NCBI GenBank assembly: GCA_001655205.1
Contig: LPNZ01008506.1
Span: 1 to 54,965 of the forward strand
Source of the DNA: Lenisia limosa
Lineage: Eukaryota; Protista; Breviatea
DNA length: 54,965 nucleotides
Reading direction: 5' to 3'
Shown in pieces: positions 37,416 through 51,156 of the stretch (position 1 is the stretch's first letter; the number at the start of each line of letters is the position of its first letter). The notes below the pieces were generated by a model. It was not told the DNA's origin. It worked only from the letters and a program-made list of their open reading frames with translations, and searched no databases. A program made the translations under genes and the position numbers.

Positions 37416-39983
37416 ATGGCACCAAAGAAGTCCAAGAAGGGTAACTGTAAGCACTTGCTTCTTGTTATCTCGCCTCCTGAGTACTCCTTCGTTTGAATTT
37501 AACCATATGCAGCTCAAGTACTCATTGATAAGCTTGAAGGGGCCCAACGCACAATGCTACAGCTTTACAACTCAACGAAGGTGGGCACTAATGCCTTTCT
37601 TTTTCGCTTTGCTGTTGTGGTACAACAGTTTTTTTATTGAATCTGTCAAGTTGGCGTATGTATCCAAAGTTGGAAATAATTCCAATCAGGTGTCCCCAAT
37701 GCCTGAAATATATCATGCCCTTCAAAACGCGATCAGTGAGAAGACCGCTCTTTCACATGTGGGCTTTGTCACCTTTTCCAGATTTAGAACTATGGCTTTT
37801 CTAAATTGTTTTCTACATTATTTTTTTTAAGGATTTTATCGGTAACATCTATTATCAAAAAGAAGAAAACCATGAGGAAAAGCGAGAGAGTGGACTCGTG
37901 CTTATTCTGCAGCTGCTTTTCAACGACGTTGTAATCCGGCCTGGAGACGTGGAACCCATTGTCTCGGTGGTCGAGTCCTTGAGCATCAAAGTCTGTCTCT
38001 AAGCTCTTCCTCTACCACCCATTATATCCTCTTGTCACACGCCCCAGGCAGTAGCAATGTGGAGAGTAACAGGTTCCATGTGGTCGTTGATCGAGAAGCT
38101 TGGCAACACAAGTGTGAAGACCCTGGAGATCATGGATACTGCGGTCAATGAGACAACAACGGTGGCTCTAAAAAGGGTTTGTTGCCCTGCTTTGTTCTCT
38201 CCAAATAAATATAGATTCTAACGGTATCAGATATTTGAGGGACCTTTGGGTGCATCTTTGACAAAGGTAGTGTTGGACCACACCCCCATCGGAGACGCTG
38301 GCGCAATTGCCATTGGTATGAACAGGCTCCCATGTTATATGCCTGTCTAGGGAGGAACTGTTAGGTATTAGACTGGTGTTCTTGAAAACGCACATCCCTT
38401 GTTTTTCTGTTAACTGAAATTGTGTAGATAACTGATTAGTGCACTAATATTCCACCATAACAAATTCTTTATAAGGTTGTCTTCACCTAGAGACATCCTT
38501 TTATATATTTATCCTTTCTTCCCGTATATAAACGTAATGTATGTACAATTGCACACATTGACACTCTTGCAGCTGAGGGGGTTCTATCCATACAAGGAGT
38601 GAAGCACTTCAGTGCTAGGTTGGGGGGGGGGGTGAGCTTCCACAGTTTTAAAAAGAATATTTGATTTAGATCATATTTTCTTCTTCACCAAATCAGCTAT
38701 TCCCCTTCAAAACAGTAAAATATTTCTGAGATATACACACTTTATTTGTTTATGAAGGGAAACAAAGAAAAAAATAACCTTTCAAAAATTTTTATTTTGA
38801 TAGATCAGCAAACTTTATCGCGAAAATTTAATATTTTTTTAGCGCCACGCTCGCGCAATTTTTTTTTCAGTTTATGCTCATTGTCCTTTTTTACGAGTTA
38901 AATTGTTGTGAAGTTGACCGTAACATGAAAAAGAGACAGTCACAGAAAATTGAATTAACGACCATAATTCGAATTAACGACAAAGTTTAGGACCTCGAGC
39001 ATATATTTATTCCCTTCACCTTGCTTTTTATTTCATCAAAATCAGGAATTTGGATTGTTTTCTGTTGGTATTCCAACCGAAGCTGCTTACTGTACCCAGA
39101 TACTGCGGTATTGAAGCCGAAGGTGCCGCCCGCTTGTCCGAGGCAATAGCTTCTTGGCCGGTTCTTCAGATCTGTGATCTTGGGGCGAACAGGATAGGCC
39201 CCGGCAGTTACGCGTTACTACGTGCTGTAGCGCACCATGGAGGGTGAGGCGGAATCCAAGGACTCTTTTAAAGCATCAAAAAACTTATTAAGCCTGAATA
39301 CCCACTATGATATATCATTATAAGCTTCTTTGATGCTATCTATTTTTTCTCACCGCTACGTAAAAAGTATGCTCTGAAGTTAACTGATTAGGTTGACCCA
39401 CTTGGATATGACGGATAACTACATATCTCCTGATGAAACATGTGAGTGTCTTCTTTCGCTTTTTTTTCTGACTTGAATCAAGTTGCCAGAGTATACCCCC
39501 CTCAACAGACACACCGAAATATCTTCATTCTCTGACTCAGCAGCTAGAAAACAACTAATCATTCAGTTGTCACCCCCTGCATCTCCGCCATTCAAGGCTG
39601 TAAGACTCTGACATCTTTGTTCCTCACAGGCAACCCACTCCCACTGGTTTGAGCAGGAGGTGCTATTAGATTGTTTCTTCTGGAATCAAATTTTTAGTAT
39701 CGTTAGCCCTTTAGTTTGGCCCTTACCTCATTAGGCCTTTGGACCTGCCCTCTTAGAAGCGATCTCAAAAACTCCACCTCCAACCCTCATGAAGGTCTCT
39801 TTACCGGTTTGCAAATTTTATCTTGAACATCATCTTCTCATATCTCATACTTGACATTTGTTTTAATTGTTTCATCCTCTGATTGTGTAGCCGCATTTGG
39901 ATTTGGCGACAACCAAGTCCATTTTGGAGCTACTGAAGTCTCGACTGAAAACTGTGCGTGGAATTCATGCTTCCCTTCAATAG
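37416..39983 (+). CDS. RNI-like leucine-rich repeat protein, multi-exon
   Basis: MAPKKSKK| start. LRR units LTKVVLDHTPIGDAGAIAIAEG, YCGIEAEGAARLSEAI, LQICDLGANRIGP, LTHLDMTDNYISP. Stop TAG at 39981-39983. Confidence 0.8.
38691..39002. mobile_element. Family D MITE, left-truncated copy, in an LRR gene intron
   Basis: Colinear and highly similar to about 35728-36030 (AAATCAGCTATTCCCCTTCAA ... TTTAGGACCTCGAGCAT). The left TIR is missing. Confidence 0.85.
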
Positions 39984-44172: not shown

Positions 44173-47100
44173 ATGGCAGAAACCCCGTCTTTCAAGCAGT
44201 CCCTCGCGGCTCTTAATGAGTTTGCAACAGGTGATTTTGACTTTGGAACCCCCGACAACAACCGAGTTCGCGATTCGAGCGATGTGAGCGGGATCTATCA
44301 GTCCTTTTCTTTCATAGAACATATTCTTGCCTCCTTCTATTCAGGGGTCACCCAAGAGTTTAATAACAATGATGTGTTATGAATGCAGATGATAAAAATT
44401 TATTTTCTAAGGGATAAGTTATGGCAGATCACAGACTTCATTGTGATGGCCTGTTTTTTCGTGTCCCGCATTCCTGTATATTCATCATACTTTCACGCTT
44501 GAAAAAATATCATTGATTTTACACACACAAACGGTGGAATATTTGAGATGACATTTGACTGTTCAATTGCACTCACCCTCAAGGATGAGTCACTTGTCGG
44601 TTACGGCGACGGTTNNNNNNNNNNNNNNNNNNNNNNNNNNNNNNNNNNNNNNNNNNNNNNNNNNNNNNNNNNNNNNNNNNNNCGTTGCTGTATTGGTATT
44701 TTTTTGGATGTTTATTTTCTGATAACACTAGATCTGAAACTTGCGTCAAAAGGCGCTTTCAGTGTCTTTGAAGATAACGACGTAACCGTCAATGTAACAT
44801 CTGTCATCAATAGCGGGCAGCTTAACCAGTAAGAGGATAATTATCAGACACTTCTCGGTATTTACATCCTTCTGTGCTATATTGGCGCATTATTGCTGAA
44901 CTCCATAACTGCCACCAGGTTTAAACAGTTTGAGAAGAAGTCTCCAGTCTCAAATGAAAATGTAGGATCCCATACCTTTCATATACTCTATCCCGGTTTT
45001 TATCAATTTGCTCACCTGACAGATTCTCACCAACCAACAACTGACGGTCCACCCCCCACACCCGAATCTAACTTCACAAAACTTCACGACACACTCAGTG
45101 GACGAGTCATTATCCATTGATATTACCGGGGTGATATCGGGGACCCCAGGCACCCATGGACTCTCGGCCACGTTGGACTCACCGGTCGGTCAAAACAGCG
45201 GAAGGGACACAACAAGTGCTTCCGAAGTAGACCTGAAGGAGTTCCAGAACACACTTCCCTCATTTGGAAACGCTAGTGTGAGTAGAATCTTCCAGAAGCC
45301 CGTCACAATTGATGAAGACGTCACATTCCCTACCTCGGAACCATCAGACACGGGAACCGAGCCATCGGCTGCCAAGTTCAATGTTTTTGCCGAAGACACC
45401 ACCGATACTTTCCGACGGACTGGAAATTTCGCCCAGGTTCGTGCTGTTCGTTAAAACAAGTCCCCCCGCTTTATTACTGAATTCTTCCTGTTTAACCCCT
45501 TAGGATCGAACAGCGGAGTCCTCTCAGGCGCCTCAGACTCTCTCCGAACCATCGTCTTCTTTCCCTGTTTTCTCCGATTCTCCAATTCAATCGTCACAAC
45601 CATCATCCCAACACAGCTCGCAGCCTTCATCATCACAGCCATTCCAGATGTTTGAAGATGACAATGTGACANNNNNNNNNNNNNNNNNNNNNNNNNNNNN
45701 NNNNNNNNNNNNNNNNNNNNNNNNNNNNNNNNNNNNNNNNNNNNNNNNNNNNNNNNNNNNNNNNNNNNNNNNNNNNNNNNNNNNNNNNNNNNNNNNNNNN
45801 NNNNNNNNNNNNNNNNNNNNNNNNNNNNNNNNNNNCCACAACCATCATCCCAACACAGCTTGCAGCCTTCATCATCACAGCCATTCCAGATGTTTGAAGA
45901 TAACAATGTGACAATTAATATTCCTGTTGTTCCCTCCTCTGGTGGTCTGAAAGTACACAGTAGTCCTGCTCCGAAGTCAAACGCTCTGATGTTCACTGAT
46001 GAGGATATTACCCTCAATTTCCCCATGAAGAAGCCCCCAAAGCCCAATCAAAAACCACCACAGAATCCAATTTCCCAGCCTTCCTCTTTCCCTGTTTTCT
46101 CCGATTCTCCAACTCAATCGTCACAACCATCATCCCAGCACAGCTCGCAGCCTTCATCATCACAGCCATTCCAGATGTTTGAAGATGACAATGTGACAGT
46201 TAATATTCCTGTTGTTCCCTCCTCTGGTGGTCTGAAAGTACACAGTAGTCCTGCTCCGAAGTCAAACGCTCTGATGTTCACTGATGAAGATATCACTCTC
46301 AATTTCCCCATGAAGTCACAGGTTTCGCCAGCCTCTGCAGAACAGGTCCCTACGTCCACAATGTTTACCGAGCTCCCAGCCAGTGCCAGCAGTCCCTTCA
46401 GCTACAACGGTACGGCCACGTCATCAAACGATCAGACCAAAACGGAGAACATGTGGGCAGAAGAAGCCATGAAACTCTCATCTGAGCATACCGCGTTGAA
46501 ACCCGAGGCCGGCCCGGAGCCGACTGAGAATACTGCGCCTATTGACCCCATGGAGCTGACAGGAAAGTCGCCACAAACGCCAGTGGCCACGTCATCGCTG
46601 TTTGTCATGGAAGACTCGCCGTTCATCGCAAAGAAGTCACTGAAAAGGTCCCCGCCTAAGTCGGTCTTGCCACAAAACCAGCCTGAGCCCCAAATTAAAC
46701 AGCCGACATTCGAGCCAGCCCCCTTTTCCGGTGAGTCTCCTGATGCTAACTCCCACTCCCCCCTGGAGCCGCAGACGCTGTTCACGGCCCCCGTGACGGC
46801 CAACTTGAAACGACCCTCCCCAGCGCCAGTCTCACAACCCGGCCCAACCCAGCCAAGTCCCCCCGCGTCTCCTTCACCCGTGCCGCCTCATGTCCAAGAA
46901 CATCAGAAGGAAATCCCCCTCAGTCACCCCCAGAGCGGACAGGTTCAGCGCAGTCCAGTTCAGGTCTTACAGAATGTAACTACTGCGACAAAGTCGCCCA
47001 TTCGTCTTCTCCCAGCAATGAGCCCCTTCCGCACGTTGCCGCAACCCGCAATGCCGAGCCCTGGCATCTTCGCCCAGACCGGACCTGTCAACAGATCGCC

Positions 47101-50100
47101 TGTTCAAAGCCCCATAGTCAACTTGACAAGCACGTCGTCCCTCTGGGCTGCCGACACCACTCTGCACGTGACTGATGTGGCTATTGAACAGGAGGCTTCG
47201 CTTTTGGTCTCAGAACCCACTGCCACTCTTGCCCGCATCCCAGTCCCAACTGAGGAACCATCTGAGACTCCTGTAGATATCCCATCCCAGTCATTTTCCG
47301 CACCGCCAACACCCACTCCGGCCGAGGCACCCCTCACACCATCCCCCGAAACACTGCAGGGTCCCAGCACGCCGAAGCCTGAAGAATCCCCACTAGCTCC
47401 ATCCCCCGTCGCAGTCAAGTCCTTCGCCGTTGCCGAGTCACCTCTTCCAAACATGTCACGCCGACGCGCGGAACTCATGTCGCCTAGCTCTCCGCACTCC
47501 TCTATTGTCCGCACGTCTCAGTCAATGTCTCCTTTTGCGGCCACGGCACAGTCTTCGAAACAGTCGCCGGAGATTAAGCAGGAGCGACTGTCCGCGTCGG
47601 TCACTTTGTCGCCCCAAGCCATCGCGAATGATAATGAGGTAGGATATGGGAGGAAAATAACAAATGTATGCATGCTGTACATACCAGCATCTCTTTTCAG
47701 TGACACTTTCATTTCCCTCGCATATTATTGGATATGATCAACCTGACTAATGCGCCAGGCTGACGACAGTGTTATCATCATTGAGCCAGAAAGTCCAAGC
47801 AATCCCGAAATTGAACCAGGTTGGTAGGACCTTTTGTTGCATCATTAACTCTAGAACGCACCCCTGAACCCTTGGACTCGCCGCCTGCTTCTCCCACGAG
47901 CGAACCAGAAGAAAGCAATCAAAGCAATCACGACTCGCCACCTCAGGAGCCAGTCCAGCCCCCCTCAGGTCTCCCGGTGCCCACTCTCAGCAAGCCTCTT
48001 AGCAATGACATGGCAGATGACATGGCACAGACCCCCCAGGCCCGTGCGCCTATACAGCCGTCTCCCGTGCCGACGGTTAACACCAGTGCGCTCAGCCCCA
48101 CGCCGTTCACCCCGAGACGGCCAGTCTCTCTCATGTCTGCCCGGACAAGGGGCACGCCCTTCACGCCTGCTCGCACGCCATTTTCACGCAACACCCCGTT
48201 CACACCCCGCTCCACTTACACAGGTTGGAACGTCAACATTTTCATTTCATTTCTTTTTTTAGCTTTTTTCAGCCATAATTTTTCTCACCTGTCTAGGTCG
48301 AATCCCGTTCACCCCGGGTACCTCATATTCGACCATGACTCCGCCGCCGGATATGTCCATTCCTTGCGTCATTAAACAGCTTGAAATTGACACCGTGCAC
48401 CCCCAGGTTAATGACGCGTAGGCGGTTTGAAACCTGCCACTTTCATCATCAACAACACGTGCATTTGTTCAGGGTTACCCCCCTCCCCCAGACCTGAGCC
48501 TTTCAACGAAAGTGACAGTTTCTTGGTCCAAGCTCTTCTGGTGGCTCCCAACACACGTTACACTCTTGAAATGTGCAAACGCATGGTGGGCTGTTGTTTC
48601 TTTTTTTTAAAGGATCATAACAAATATTCGACTGAAATGGATGCTGTCAGTTAGCATCTTTCACTCCCAAAGGAGATGTATCTTCAGAAGCACTCCGGCC
48701 AAACGGCTGAGATTGAGAACGCGATCAACGAAGACTTTCCAGCGTCTCTTGCTTACAGGCTGTCTTCATGTGAGGGGGGGGGGGGTTCATAGGACTACTA
48801 TTAAGATACTACATGCGTTTTGTTGCTCATAGATAATCCTCTGGTCTGGAACAGTTCGAATGTGAGTGACCACACCGTAGTGTCTTCTGAAGAGTTGGAG
48901 GAAATGAAGGACTCCGCCGATCGACTGTGGACGGAATTCAGAGCAAACGTAAGGGGATAATTCGAAACTAATTGGGTGAGATCACGGTGTGAATTTTCGC
49001 AGTTCGAAATAATTTTCCATTACATAGGCTTTCCAAAATTGAGACGGAATGGCAGGTTTTCAAGAAGCATCTTTTGATTAGGAAAATTGAACATTTAGGC
49101 AAACCAAATCTGGTGCCGTTACCGTAGCAAAGAGGAAGAAAAGCTGCTGGAAGTCTTGAATCGAGTCAACACCAGGATTACAAGGGTGGGTCAAGCTGCA
49201 AGGAAATATTATATCTCTTACTTAAGTGTATATAATCATTTCAATTACTGTACATCGACTATCTCTCCAATAGGAACTCACGACGTTCACGAAGCCCTTC
49301 TCAGATTGACTCTTTAGGATACCATGGTGTTAGNNNNNNNNNNNNNNNNNNNNNNNNNNNNNNNNNNNNNNNNNNNNNNNNNNNNNNNNNNNNNNNNNNN
49401 NNNNNNNNNNNNNNNNNNNNNNNNNNNNNNNNNNNNNNNNNNNNNNNNNNNNNNNNNNNNNNNTTCAGGTGTAGTGATGGTGACTAACGTTTTAGTTTGG
49501 ACAGTAGGTTCCAAGGGCTACTGAAGGAAGGAGACGGTCTTGCTGCTCAGAAGTCTCAGGCCACGATGCGGCTGCAGAAGGCAAAGAAAGACATCGCAAG
49601 ACTGAACGTTGGAGGACAATATCGAGAAAGTAATACTGTCTTTTTTTTCTTTTTGCTTTGCGCTCCTTGTTCCACGATACGAATAGCATAAGGGTTCTTA
49701 CCAAGAGGAATTACCGGAGAAATGACTCTTGATTCTGTAAATATGTTAGGCTGAGGCTGAGACGCTTCGAGTTGAGCTTCGAAGCACTGAGCAGAAGATG
49801 CGGAGTATTGAGAGAGAAAACACGGCCCTCAACTCTCGACAGGCTGTTTTGGATACTGAGAAAGGTGTCGGTGACAAGCACTCGGTATGCCCCTGCAAGT
49901 TATCAAACACACTTCATGAACACTGTGATAATATGATAAATAGGCTTGAGTAATTGTGTTTTTGCTTCAATTATACTACATTTTGGTCATTCAATTGGCA
50001 GACTAAAAAGACTTCACAAATAATAACATAATATTTAATAAATACATGGACTCTCTTCTTCAAACCAGTGGCTCACCTTTGCAGTTTGAGTCGGACCGAT

Positions 50101-51156
50101 ATGGTGTTGTGACGTCTTTGGCAGAGTACAAGACTATCATCATCACACCTTTGGTTGGTTCACATAAATGTTCATTCGGTCCAACAATTGTTTTGTGCAT
50201 GTCTTTAATCACACAAGGAAACGAGAGTATCGTTCTTGGAGGGAGCCTTTGAGTTTTCAGCGCGGTACAGCACAGCATCAGTCAACGATGGTTGGAATTG
50301 TCTTTACAAGAGGCAAATCATTATTGAGCATTTTTCTGTTTCTTTGACATCCTGCTTATTCATCATCAAACTCCTTAAGCTATGACCTTTTACCTTATCA
50401 TTAACCACCATACAGACGGGTCAAGACCGGTGGACTTCTGTTCGTTTGTGCCGTCAGCACTGCTCGGCAAAGCATCCTTCCTCACTGCTGCCGTCCACCA
50501 CGCCGACCTCAACCGCCTGTGCTGCAGAGTCGTGTCGTCGAAAATGGTCCCTCTGGTAGGGCTTTCCTCCTGGCTATTGACTCTCTAGGTCCTGTCCCAA
50601 ATTGGCCTTGTCATCAGCCGCCTAACCGAAGCCTTCAAGGACCTCTGCGCTGTTGACACTCAGGTTTCTTCGGCTGTGGAGGACGACGGTACCCCCATTT
50701 TCACTGTGGAAGTCAAGCCCACACCGGGGTTGATATATCATGGTAGGGCCAAACTGATTTTGTGTCACCTCTCTATGATACGGTCCCAGCTTCAATATAG
50801 ACATTTACAGTAAATTGTTCCATCTTATTGAGTAGCGTCCTTTGTTTTGGACTGGAACTATCCGTTCCAGCCGCTCGAGCTTCGGACCATTACGGCGGTG
50901 TCCGGCGGCGTGGATAACGAGGCGGTGAAGGAGGTGCGTCCAAGGTTTACATTCTGAGTGCAAAGGAATATCGAAACTTGTGAGAATTTATCAAGAATTC
51001 AGGCTTTTTAAGAATTGAATTCAAGTTTATATGGTTCAAGTACCGTATTCTAAACACGTTATGTTGACATCTCAGGCGATTCTTGATACCAAGCCCGGGC
51101 CGGACCTCATAAATCGAACTATTCGGGCCATGTGCTCCACTTCAACTCATCTCTAG
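44173..51156 (+). CDS. KNL1: Divergent KNL1/Spc105 (CASC5)-like outer kinetochore scaffold protein
   Basis: Architecture: long S/P/T-rich disordered region with repeats and a literal MELT (46550-46561), then LLVAPNTRYTLEMCKRML, a coiled coil (ETLRVELRSTEQKMRSIERENTAL) and a C-terminus resembling the KNL1 tandem RWD (RVSFLEGAFEF; VPLVLSQIGLVISRL; FVLDWNYPFQPLELRTITAVSGGVDNEAVKEAILDTKPGPDLINRTIRAMC). Stop TAG at 51154-51156. Three N-gaps. Confidence 0.75.
45545..46315 (+). repeat. Coding tandem repeat, 285-bp (95-aa) unit, at least 3 copies, within the KNL1-like gene
   Basis: The MFEDDNVT/MFEDNNVT codons start at 45648, 45890 and 46175; the last two are exactly 285 bp apart. The copies are nearly identical at the nucleotide level. 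An N-gap (45672-45835) lies inside the array. Confidence 0.92.

Follow-up and report, generated by a model that had tools for sequence, protein, structure and literature searches.

A recently duplicated 285-bp coding repeat with MELT-like motifs in a possible KNL1 gene of the protist Lenisia limosa

The 54,965-bp scaffold of Lenisia limosa studied here (contig LPNZ01008506.1), analysed over its whole length and referred to as the window, carries a multi-exon gene with GT-AG introns on its plus strand. The 2.1-kb main exon of this gene contains a tandem array of a 285-bp coding unit (95 residues). The window is eukaryotic DNA with a GC content of 0.44 and contains 12 runs of N of varied, estimated length, one of which falls within the array. 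Direct-repeat detection and base-by-base comparison revealed the unit in three stretches that are 96–97% identical, all of them, like every exon described below, on the plus strand. Copy A (45555–45671) spans unit positions 1–117, is 97% identical to copy C and ends in the motif QMFEDDNVT at the edge of a 164-N assembly gap (45672–45835). Copy B (45837–46081) spans unit positions 41–285, contains QMFEDNNVT, LMFTDEDIT and a 51-bp linker, and is 96% identical to C over 194 nt. It is followed by copy C (46082–46315; unit positions 1–234), which contains QMFEDDNVT and LMFTDEDIT and after which the similarity stops. The linker, unit positions 235–285 (KKPPKPNQKPPQNPISQP), appears a single time in the sequence, where B adjoins C.

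Substitutions among the copies lean synonymous. A and C differ at 3 of 117 positions, two of them synonymous, and B and C at 7 of 194, four of them synonymous; three of these four lie inside the E-D-I-T codons of the second motif. A and B differ at 2 of 77 positions, both non-synonymous, and at both A matches C and not B. As B and C are contiguous and distinct, with no gap and a unique linker between them, at least one duplication is real, which answers the concern that the repeat might be an artefact of assembly. The array is a genuine tandem duplication of coding DNA. A sequence-only reading of this DNA had described near-identical 285-bp units with two motifs each and had proposed that they were recently amplified; both points are borne out, and the duplicated block is coding and predicted to be disordered. 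Searching the fragmented 49-Mb assembly with the repeat, both as DNA and as protein, returned this locus only, indicating a single-copy gene. Tandem Repeats Finder did not report the array because of the gap.

The same gap hides the copy number, as had also been noted from the letters alone. Codons start at 0 mod 3 before the gap and at 2 mod 3 beyond it, which means that a run of exactly 164 N disrupts the reading frame. Relative to the 285-bp unit, however, the two flanks share one codon phase, and a gap of 207 bp (164 + 43), or of 207 + 285k bp, restores register and frame; by this arithmetic it would conceal the remainder of A, a linker and the first part of B. Merging A with B through their overlap (77 bp, 2 mismatches) likewise preserves the frame. 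Continuity of the open reading frame (ORF) across the gap is well supported, and the true length of the gap is probably 207 bp (or 207 + 285k bp). Two, three or more units fit the frame. Three are the most likely number, because the gap estimate of 164 is near 207 and because A agrees with C over B at both mismatches.

A 12-residue motif, M-F-x-D-[DE]-[DN]-[VI]-T-[VL]-N-[IF]-P, occurs twice in each unit. The young motifs comprise the type 1 sequence QMFEDDNVT (45645–45671 and 46172–46198), QMFEDNNVT (45887–45913) and LMFTDEDIT (45986–46012 and 46271–46297). Older copies lie upstream, namely VFEDNDVT (44764–44787), LSIDIT (45110–45127), IDEDVT (45308–45325) and VFAEDTT (45383–45403). Later in the large exon, the weaker relatives MFTEL (46361–46375) and MEDS (46607–46618, within VMEDS) are found together with PMELT (46547–46561), the single canonical MELT. 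All motifs quoted in the sequence-only reading, young, degenerate and canonical, were recovered at the positions it gave. The two half-units of the repeat are alike only over the 12–13 residues of the motif (MFEDDNVTVNIPV versus MFTDEDITLNFPM, E 3e-5), and the older copy in the upstream exon, FSVFEDNDVTVNVTSVINSGQL, is identical at 12 of 22 residues to the unit part FQMFEDDNVTVNIPVVPSSGGL (E 8e-7). These matches imply at least three rounds of duplication, namely one that gave rise to the old unit copy, an old split into half-units and the recent block duplication, through which the motif persisted as the flanking sequence decayed.

Outside the young copies, the pattern acid-x(0-1)-[DN]-[IV]-T occurs at four distinct sites, corresponding to seven overlapping regular-expression matches where 0.14 are expected. 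This is an approximately 50-fold excess over shuffled sequences, and none of 5000 shuffles reached it. The acid-flanked sites are all located in the N-terminal part of the gene. Conservation of the threonine, on which the earlier proposal depended, is confirmed, as a Thr-centred acidic motif is common to both old half-units and to the older upstream copies. The claim that the aromatic, acidic and Thr positions are all kept holds for the young motifs; the aromatic residue is missing from the older SIDIT and IDEDVT. Similarly, the description of the motif as Met-less is only partly apt. The young motifs read Q-M-F or L-M-F and so carry Met at –7 and Phe at –6 relative to the threonine, whereas the hydrophobic –3 residue, the Met position of MELT, is indeed replaced. 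Among the nine readable [DEN]-[IV]-T sites with flanking acids, the –3 residue is D, E or N in six, Ile in one and Ala in one.

AlphaFold (AF2) prediction of one unit (46082–46366) gave a predicted local distance difference test (pLDDT) score of 53.6, which rose slightly at both motifs, and showed no secondary structure. In this model the motif would be a short linear motif embedded in disorder. Several known motif classes were considered and rejected. Half of the motifs are not N-x-T, which speaks against an N-glycosylation sequon, and V-T-V-N-I does not provide the hydrophobic run required of a SUMO-interaction motif. Of the FFAT, LIR, clathrin/AP2 and B56 motifs, none suits both motif types.

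To place the array within its gene, exons were joined in local scripts for stop-codon counts and splice paths were enumerated. The resulting chain of exons has 1,017 open codons (236 before the gap and 781 after it) and six GT-AG introns of 90, 61, 67, 120, 35 and 73 nt, with consistent phases throughout; the complete gene would comprise roughly 1,400–1,600 codons. The exon with the old unit copy FSVFEDNDVTVNVTSVINSGQL (44746–44828) is an open frame with the donor GTAAGA, and its 5′ edge, just past another gap (44615–44682), is uncertain. Immediately before that gap, the open piece 44540–44614 reads GGIFEMTFDCSIALTLKDESLVGYGDG and may be a further 5′ exon with an F-E-M-T type site. A candidate 43-nt micro-exon (FKQFEKKSPVSNEN; 44919–44961) follows in the open chain between GT-AG introns of 90 and 61 nt. 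It is provisional because a single 190-nt GT..TG intron (44829–45018), which joins ...SGQLNQ to QILTNQQ, keeps the frame too. The next exon (45023–45436) is open, contains LSIDIT, IDEDVT and VFAEDTT, and is connected through a 67-nt GT-AG intron with a phase-0 junction to the large exon that carries the array (45504–47638). The latter is open on both sides of the gap, comprises approximately 726 codons if the gap is 207 bp, and is S/P/T-rich and disordered, with 15% P, 15% S and 10% T.

Downstream of the large exon, a 61-nt exon (ADDSVIIIEPESPSNPEIEP; 47759–47819) with phase-consistent GT-AG junctions lies between introns of 120 and 35 nt. Its acidic-hydrophobic product resembles SUMO-interaction motifs and the EFIID motif of CENP-C. 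Two further exons of the open chain (47855–48223 and 48297–48406; phase-1 junctions) contain a cluster of four TPFTP-type repeats with Cdk-type TPxR sites. Reading-frame pieces between 48868 and 49869 are candidate helical, coiled-coil-like exons (EELEEMKDSADRLWTEFRAN; KEEEKLLEVLNRVNTRIT; LAAQKSQATMRLQKAKKDIARL; AEAETLRVELRSTEQKMRSIERENTALNSRQAVLDTEK). These pieces are poor in Pro and Gly, charged and heptad-like; their borders and spliced model are unsettled, and a gap (49334–49463) lies among them. The candidate last three exons (50589–50741, ~50871–50933 and ~51075–51156) end in a TAG at 51154–51156 and would encode approximately 100 residues in which, by eye, a helix, four strands and helices can be read. 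For the 51-residue exon 50589–50741, AF2 predicted a helix (residues 2–20) and a hairpin (22–30/36–44) with a pLDDT of 78.5.

The unusual splice donor AG/GTTGG is found in this gene at 47820, 48224, ~50154 and ~50292. It also borders an intron of 36 nt in Ndc80 on another contig of the same assembly (C210, ~1640–1675). AG/GTTGG beside introns of 35–36 nt thus looks like a donor signature of the organism, and because it is common to both genes, the KNL1-like gene and the Ndc80 gene come from the same organism. Elsewhere in the window, the open piece 38978–39244 (plus strand; GIEAEGAARLSEAIASWPVLQICDLGANRIGPGSYALLRAV) resembles a leucine-rich repeat of the ribonuclease-inhibitor type and probably belongs, as an exon, to the neighbouring gene upstream. 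An Rfam scan of the window gave no match, and a Pfam scan of nine other ORFs in the window gave nothing useful.

The array was originally read as belonging to KNL1, the kinetochore scaffold also known as Spc105 or Spc7. KNL1 orthologues have been accepted on the basis of SILK/RVSF motifs, MELT-like repeats, a coiled coil and a C-terminal RWD domain (Tromer et al. 2015, PMC4558858). Their repeat arrays evolve by block duplication and homogenisation, some have no discernible MELT, and Pro at +4 is recurrent (PMC4558858). The gene described here shares much of this layout. Like KNL1/Spc105/Spc7, it encodes a large disordered protein from a single genomic copy, with an N-terminal motif array (PMC4558858), and as in KNL1 a recent block duplication sits atop older, decayed copies (PMC4558858). 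The core of the motif is also KNL1-like, with an acidic residue or Asn at –2, an aliphatic residue at –1, the Thr and Pro at +4, as is the presence of one canonical MELT. The long S/P-rich linker with Cdk-type TPxR sites, the candidate helical exons and a putative small C-terminal alpha/beta end extend the resemblance. This organism has a canonical kinetochore, Ndc80 scoring 80 bits on contig C210, and no better KNL1 candidate was found by Pfam elsewhere in the assembly.

Negative results stand against this identification. Homology searches and AlphaFold runs were carried out on individual exon or ORF pieces of the gene, and Pfam identified no family on any of 19 such pieces. A HMMER search of 1.84 billion protein representatives with the 597-residue exon piece gave 0 matches. 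Word searches with the C-terminal piece and with a 633-residue piece, the latter swamped by low-complexity candidates, yielded no homologue, and neither did an Atlas search with the large exon, two metagenome scans or a phmmer search of the PDB. PF18210 (Knl1_RWD_C) had no match anywhere in the assembly. PF08317 (Spc7) had none on the contig of the gene and matched weakly (E 0.46) only on contig C9898 (5097–8531, minus strand), in an uninterrupted ORF of 1144 residues that has no Pfam family at E 0.1. Unusually long for an intron-rich genome, this ORF probably encodes a repetitive coiled-coil protein. No SILK ([SG]ILK) or RVSF motif for PP1 docking occurs in frame in the readable 5′ exons, although the gap at 44615–44682 may hide an exon, and the Bub1/Mad3 TPR family (Mad3_BUB1_I) was not detected in the fragmented assembly.

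Downstream of 48407 the gene model is unsettled, with small exons after the helical pieces, and exons this short give homology searches little power. The RWD domain belongs to the UBC/UEV fold class. For exon 50589–50741, the nearest named Atlas clusters are UBC-core fragments with a score of 0.87, which is below significance. Foldseek with the 51-residue model placed UEV domains among its weak rows (E 1.6–3, not significant), and VIA-align with this model found nothing. KNL1 is notoriously difficult to detect by sequence (PMC4558858). The homology negatives weigh little, because of this difficulty and because the exons here are short; no positive evidence stands in their place. On balance, the KNL1/Spc105 orthologue of the organism is the likeliest identity of this gene, with a probability that we put at roughly 0.45.

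The –3 residue of the dominant motifs conflicts with known Bub3 recognition. When MELT is bound to Bub3-Bub1 in the yeast structure, a deep hydrophobic pocket takes up the –3 and –1 residues, the –2 Glu and the phosphothreonine face three arginines, and the +3 Phe stacks on Lys193, all on a surface of exceptional conservation (Primorac 2013). The –2 (D/N), –1 (V/I), Thr and +3 (I/F/V) positions of the motif agree with this Bub3-bound MELT, and Pro is found at +4. However, canonical Bub3 docking by the dominant motifs is doubtful, because their –3 residue is D, E or N where yeast buries a hydrophobic residue. The motif may instead bind in a shifted register, fit a pocket that has changed or serve a different reader. 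The conserved block, which spans 12 residues and includes F at –6 and M at –7, is also longer than in KNL1.

Departures from the MELT consensus are not new. In yeast Spc105, the Met-less motif IDLT recruits Bub3-Bub1, more weakly (PMC7292645), and the SIDIT of this gene is of the IDLT type. Insects have DMSLT and MEET, and drosophilids EP[MI]EEE (PMC4558858). Such forms show that the MELT consensus drifts. In contrast to the present motif, these variants keep a hydrophobic –3 residue (I or M) or alter other positions, and none of them has an acidic residue or Asn as its prevailing –3 residue. A new repeat dialect would therefore lie in the changed –3 position; Met-less and otherwise altered consensus forms had already been published (PMC7292645, PMC4558858). 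Precedents for the recruitment of checkpoint proteins by KNL1 through lineage-specific motifs with co-adapted readers, although unrelated in sequence to this motif, come from two reports: Arabidopsis KNL1 is presented in one as being without MELT repeats (PMC10786300), and in the other the TF motifs of C. elegans KNL-1 are read by the BUB-1 TPR domain (PMC10996584).

Alternative explanations must be weighed against the KNL1 identification. It is a real possibility, albeit one we do not favour, that the gene encodes an unrelated, lineage-specific disordered scaffold that underwent the same duplication, its motif being read by another phospho-binding domain or by a partner that adds a beta-strand to the alternating V-T-V-N-I. 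The missing PP1 motifs, the lack of Pfam or other homology and the misfit of an acidic –3 residue with the known Bub3 pocket speak for this, and disordered proteins with a helical tail are common. Outside KNL1, however, it would be unusual to find an array of [DEN]-[IV]-T-hydrophobic motifs with Pro at +4 combined with PMELT, MEDS, block duplication, a long linker, helical exons and an alpha/beta end of approximately 100 residues, and Pfam searches of the assembly gave no alternative KNL1 candidate. A different doubt concerns the array itself and is compatible with either KNL1 or an unrelated scaffold. A and B could be one copy, or two alleles, left as unmerged contig ends at a spurious gap, leaving two units only. 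Duplicated gap flanks are a common scaffolding artefact, and here the flanks duplicate each other over 77 bp with 2 mismatches and can be merged in frame. We nevertheless consider this unlikely, as gap sizes in the window vary and were estimated, the value of 164 lies near 207 and far from –77, and A sides with C at both mismatches; the gapless junction of B and C, with its 7 differences and unique linker, secures at least one duplication regardless.

Two further identities fare considerably worse. Another centromere or kinetochore protein, for example a CENP-C-like scaffold, would also be a long disordered protein with Cdk-type sites, and DDSVIIIE is similar to the EFIID-type CCAN-binding motif, as is SARTRGTPF to the start of the CENP-C motif. 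Yet SARTRGTPFTPA lacks the aromatic-Trp end of that motif, and the fourfold recurrence of TPFTP suggests a simple repeat. Moreover, no CENP-C cupin or other Pfam match was obtained, and helical exons followed by a helix-hairpin C-terminal exon misfit an all-beta cupin, rendering this identity very improbable. It is hardly credible that the product is a mucin-like glycoprotein, secreted or at the cell surface, whose Pro/Ser/Thr-rich repeat uses NVT as a sequon for N-glycosylation. Although P, S and T make up 40% of residues and NVT in the type 1 motif is a sequon, half of the motifs read DIT or DVT and are no sequon, the conserved part being [DN]-[VI]-T. There is neither a signal peptide at the candidate start MAETPSFKQS nor a hydrophobic C-terminal anchor, and helical exons together with TPxR sites of the Cdk type indicate that the protein is intracellular.

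Returning to the KNL1 identification, the following scenario could account for the locus. Unequal crossover would have copied a 285-bp block in the large, disordered exon of this single-copy gene, either once or, with greater likelihood, twice. Each block carries two anciently diverged copies of the motif, with weaker copies upstream (FEDNDVT, SIDIT, IDEDVT and FAEDTT) and downstream (MFTEL, PMELT and VMEDS). A [DEN]-x-T-hydrophobic core suits acidophilic mitotic kinases of the Plk1 or Mps1 type. We infer that the invariant threonine may be phosphorylated by such a kinase, which would turn the array into a multivalent phospho-docking platform. The motif could then be the local version of MELT, which kept an acidic residue at –2, an aliphatic one at –1, the Thr, a hydrophobic residue at +3 and Pro at +4, and lost the hydrophobic –3 anchor. 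In its full form, this would make the gene the KNL1 of a deep-branching protist with a Bub-recruiting repeat that dispenses with the –3 anchor, a residue that every Bub3 studied so far buries in a conserved pocket, either because the Bub3 pocket changed or because the upstream M-F pair or a different reader took over. We regard this full scenario as doubtful.

The locus illustrates how such scaffolds evade annotation: the coding sequence is divided over numerous small exons, no relatives of the main exon are present among 1.84 billion proteins, and the assembly broke at the repeat. Should the gene not be KNL1, it simply joins the lineage-specific disordered proteins that contain a duplicated motif, and is of limited interest. 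Even if it is KNL1, altered forms of the repeat consensus are a known theme. In that case, what is known of the fast turnover of KNL1 repeats would be extended by a lineage whose repeat consensus is unusual, and the array would provide a concrete peptide for testing how strictly Bub3 needs a hydrophobic residue at –3. Were the loss of the –3 anchor in KNL1 to prove true, the array would represent a natural experiment on the rewiring of a very conserved phospho-reader interface.

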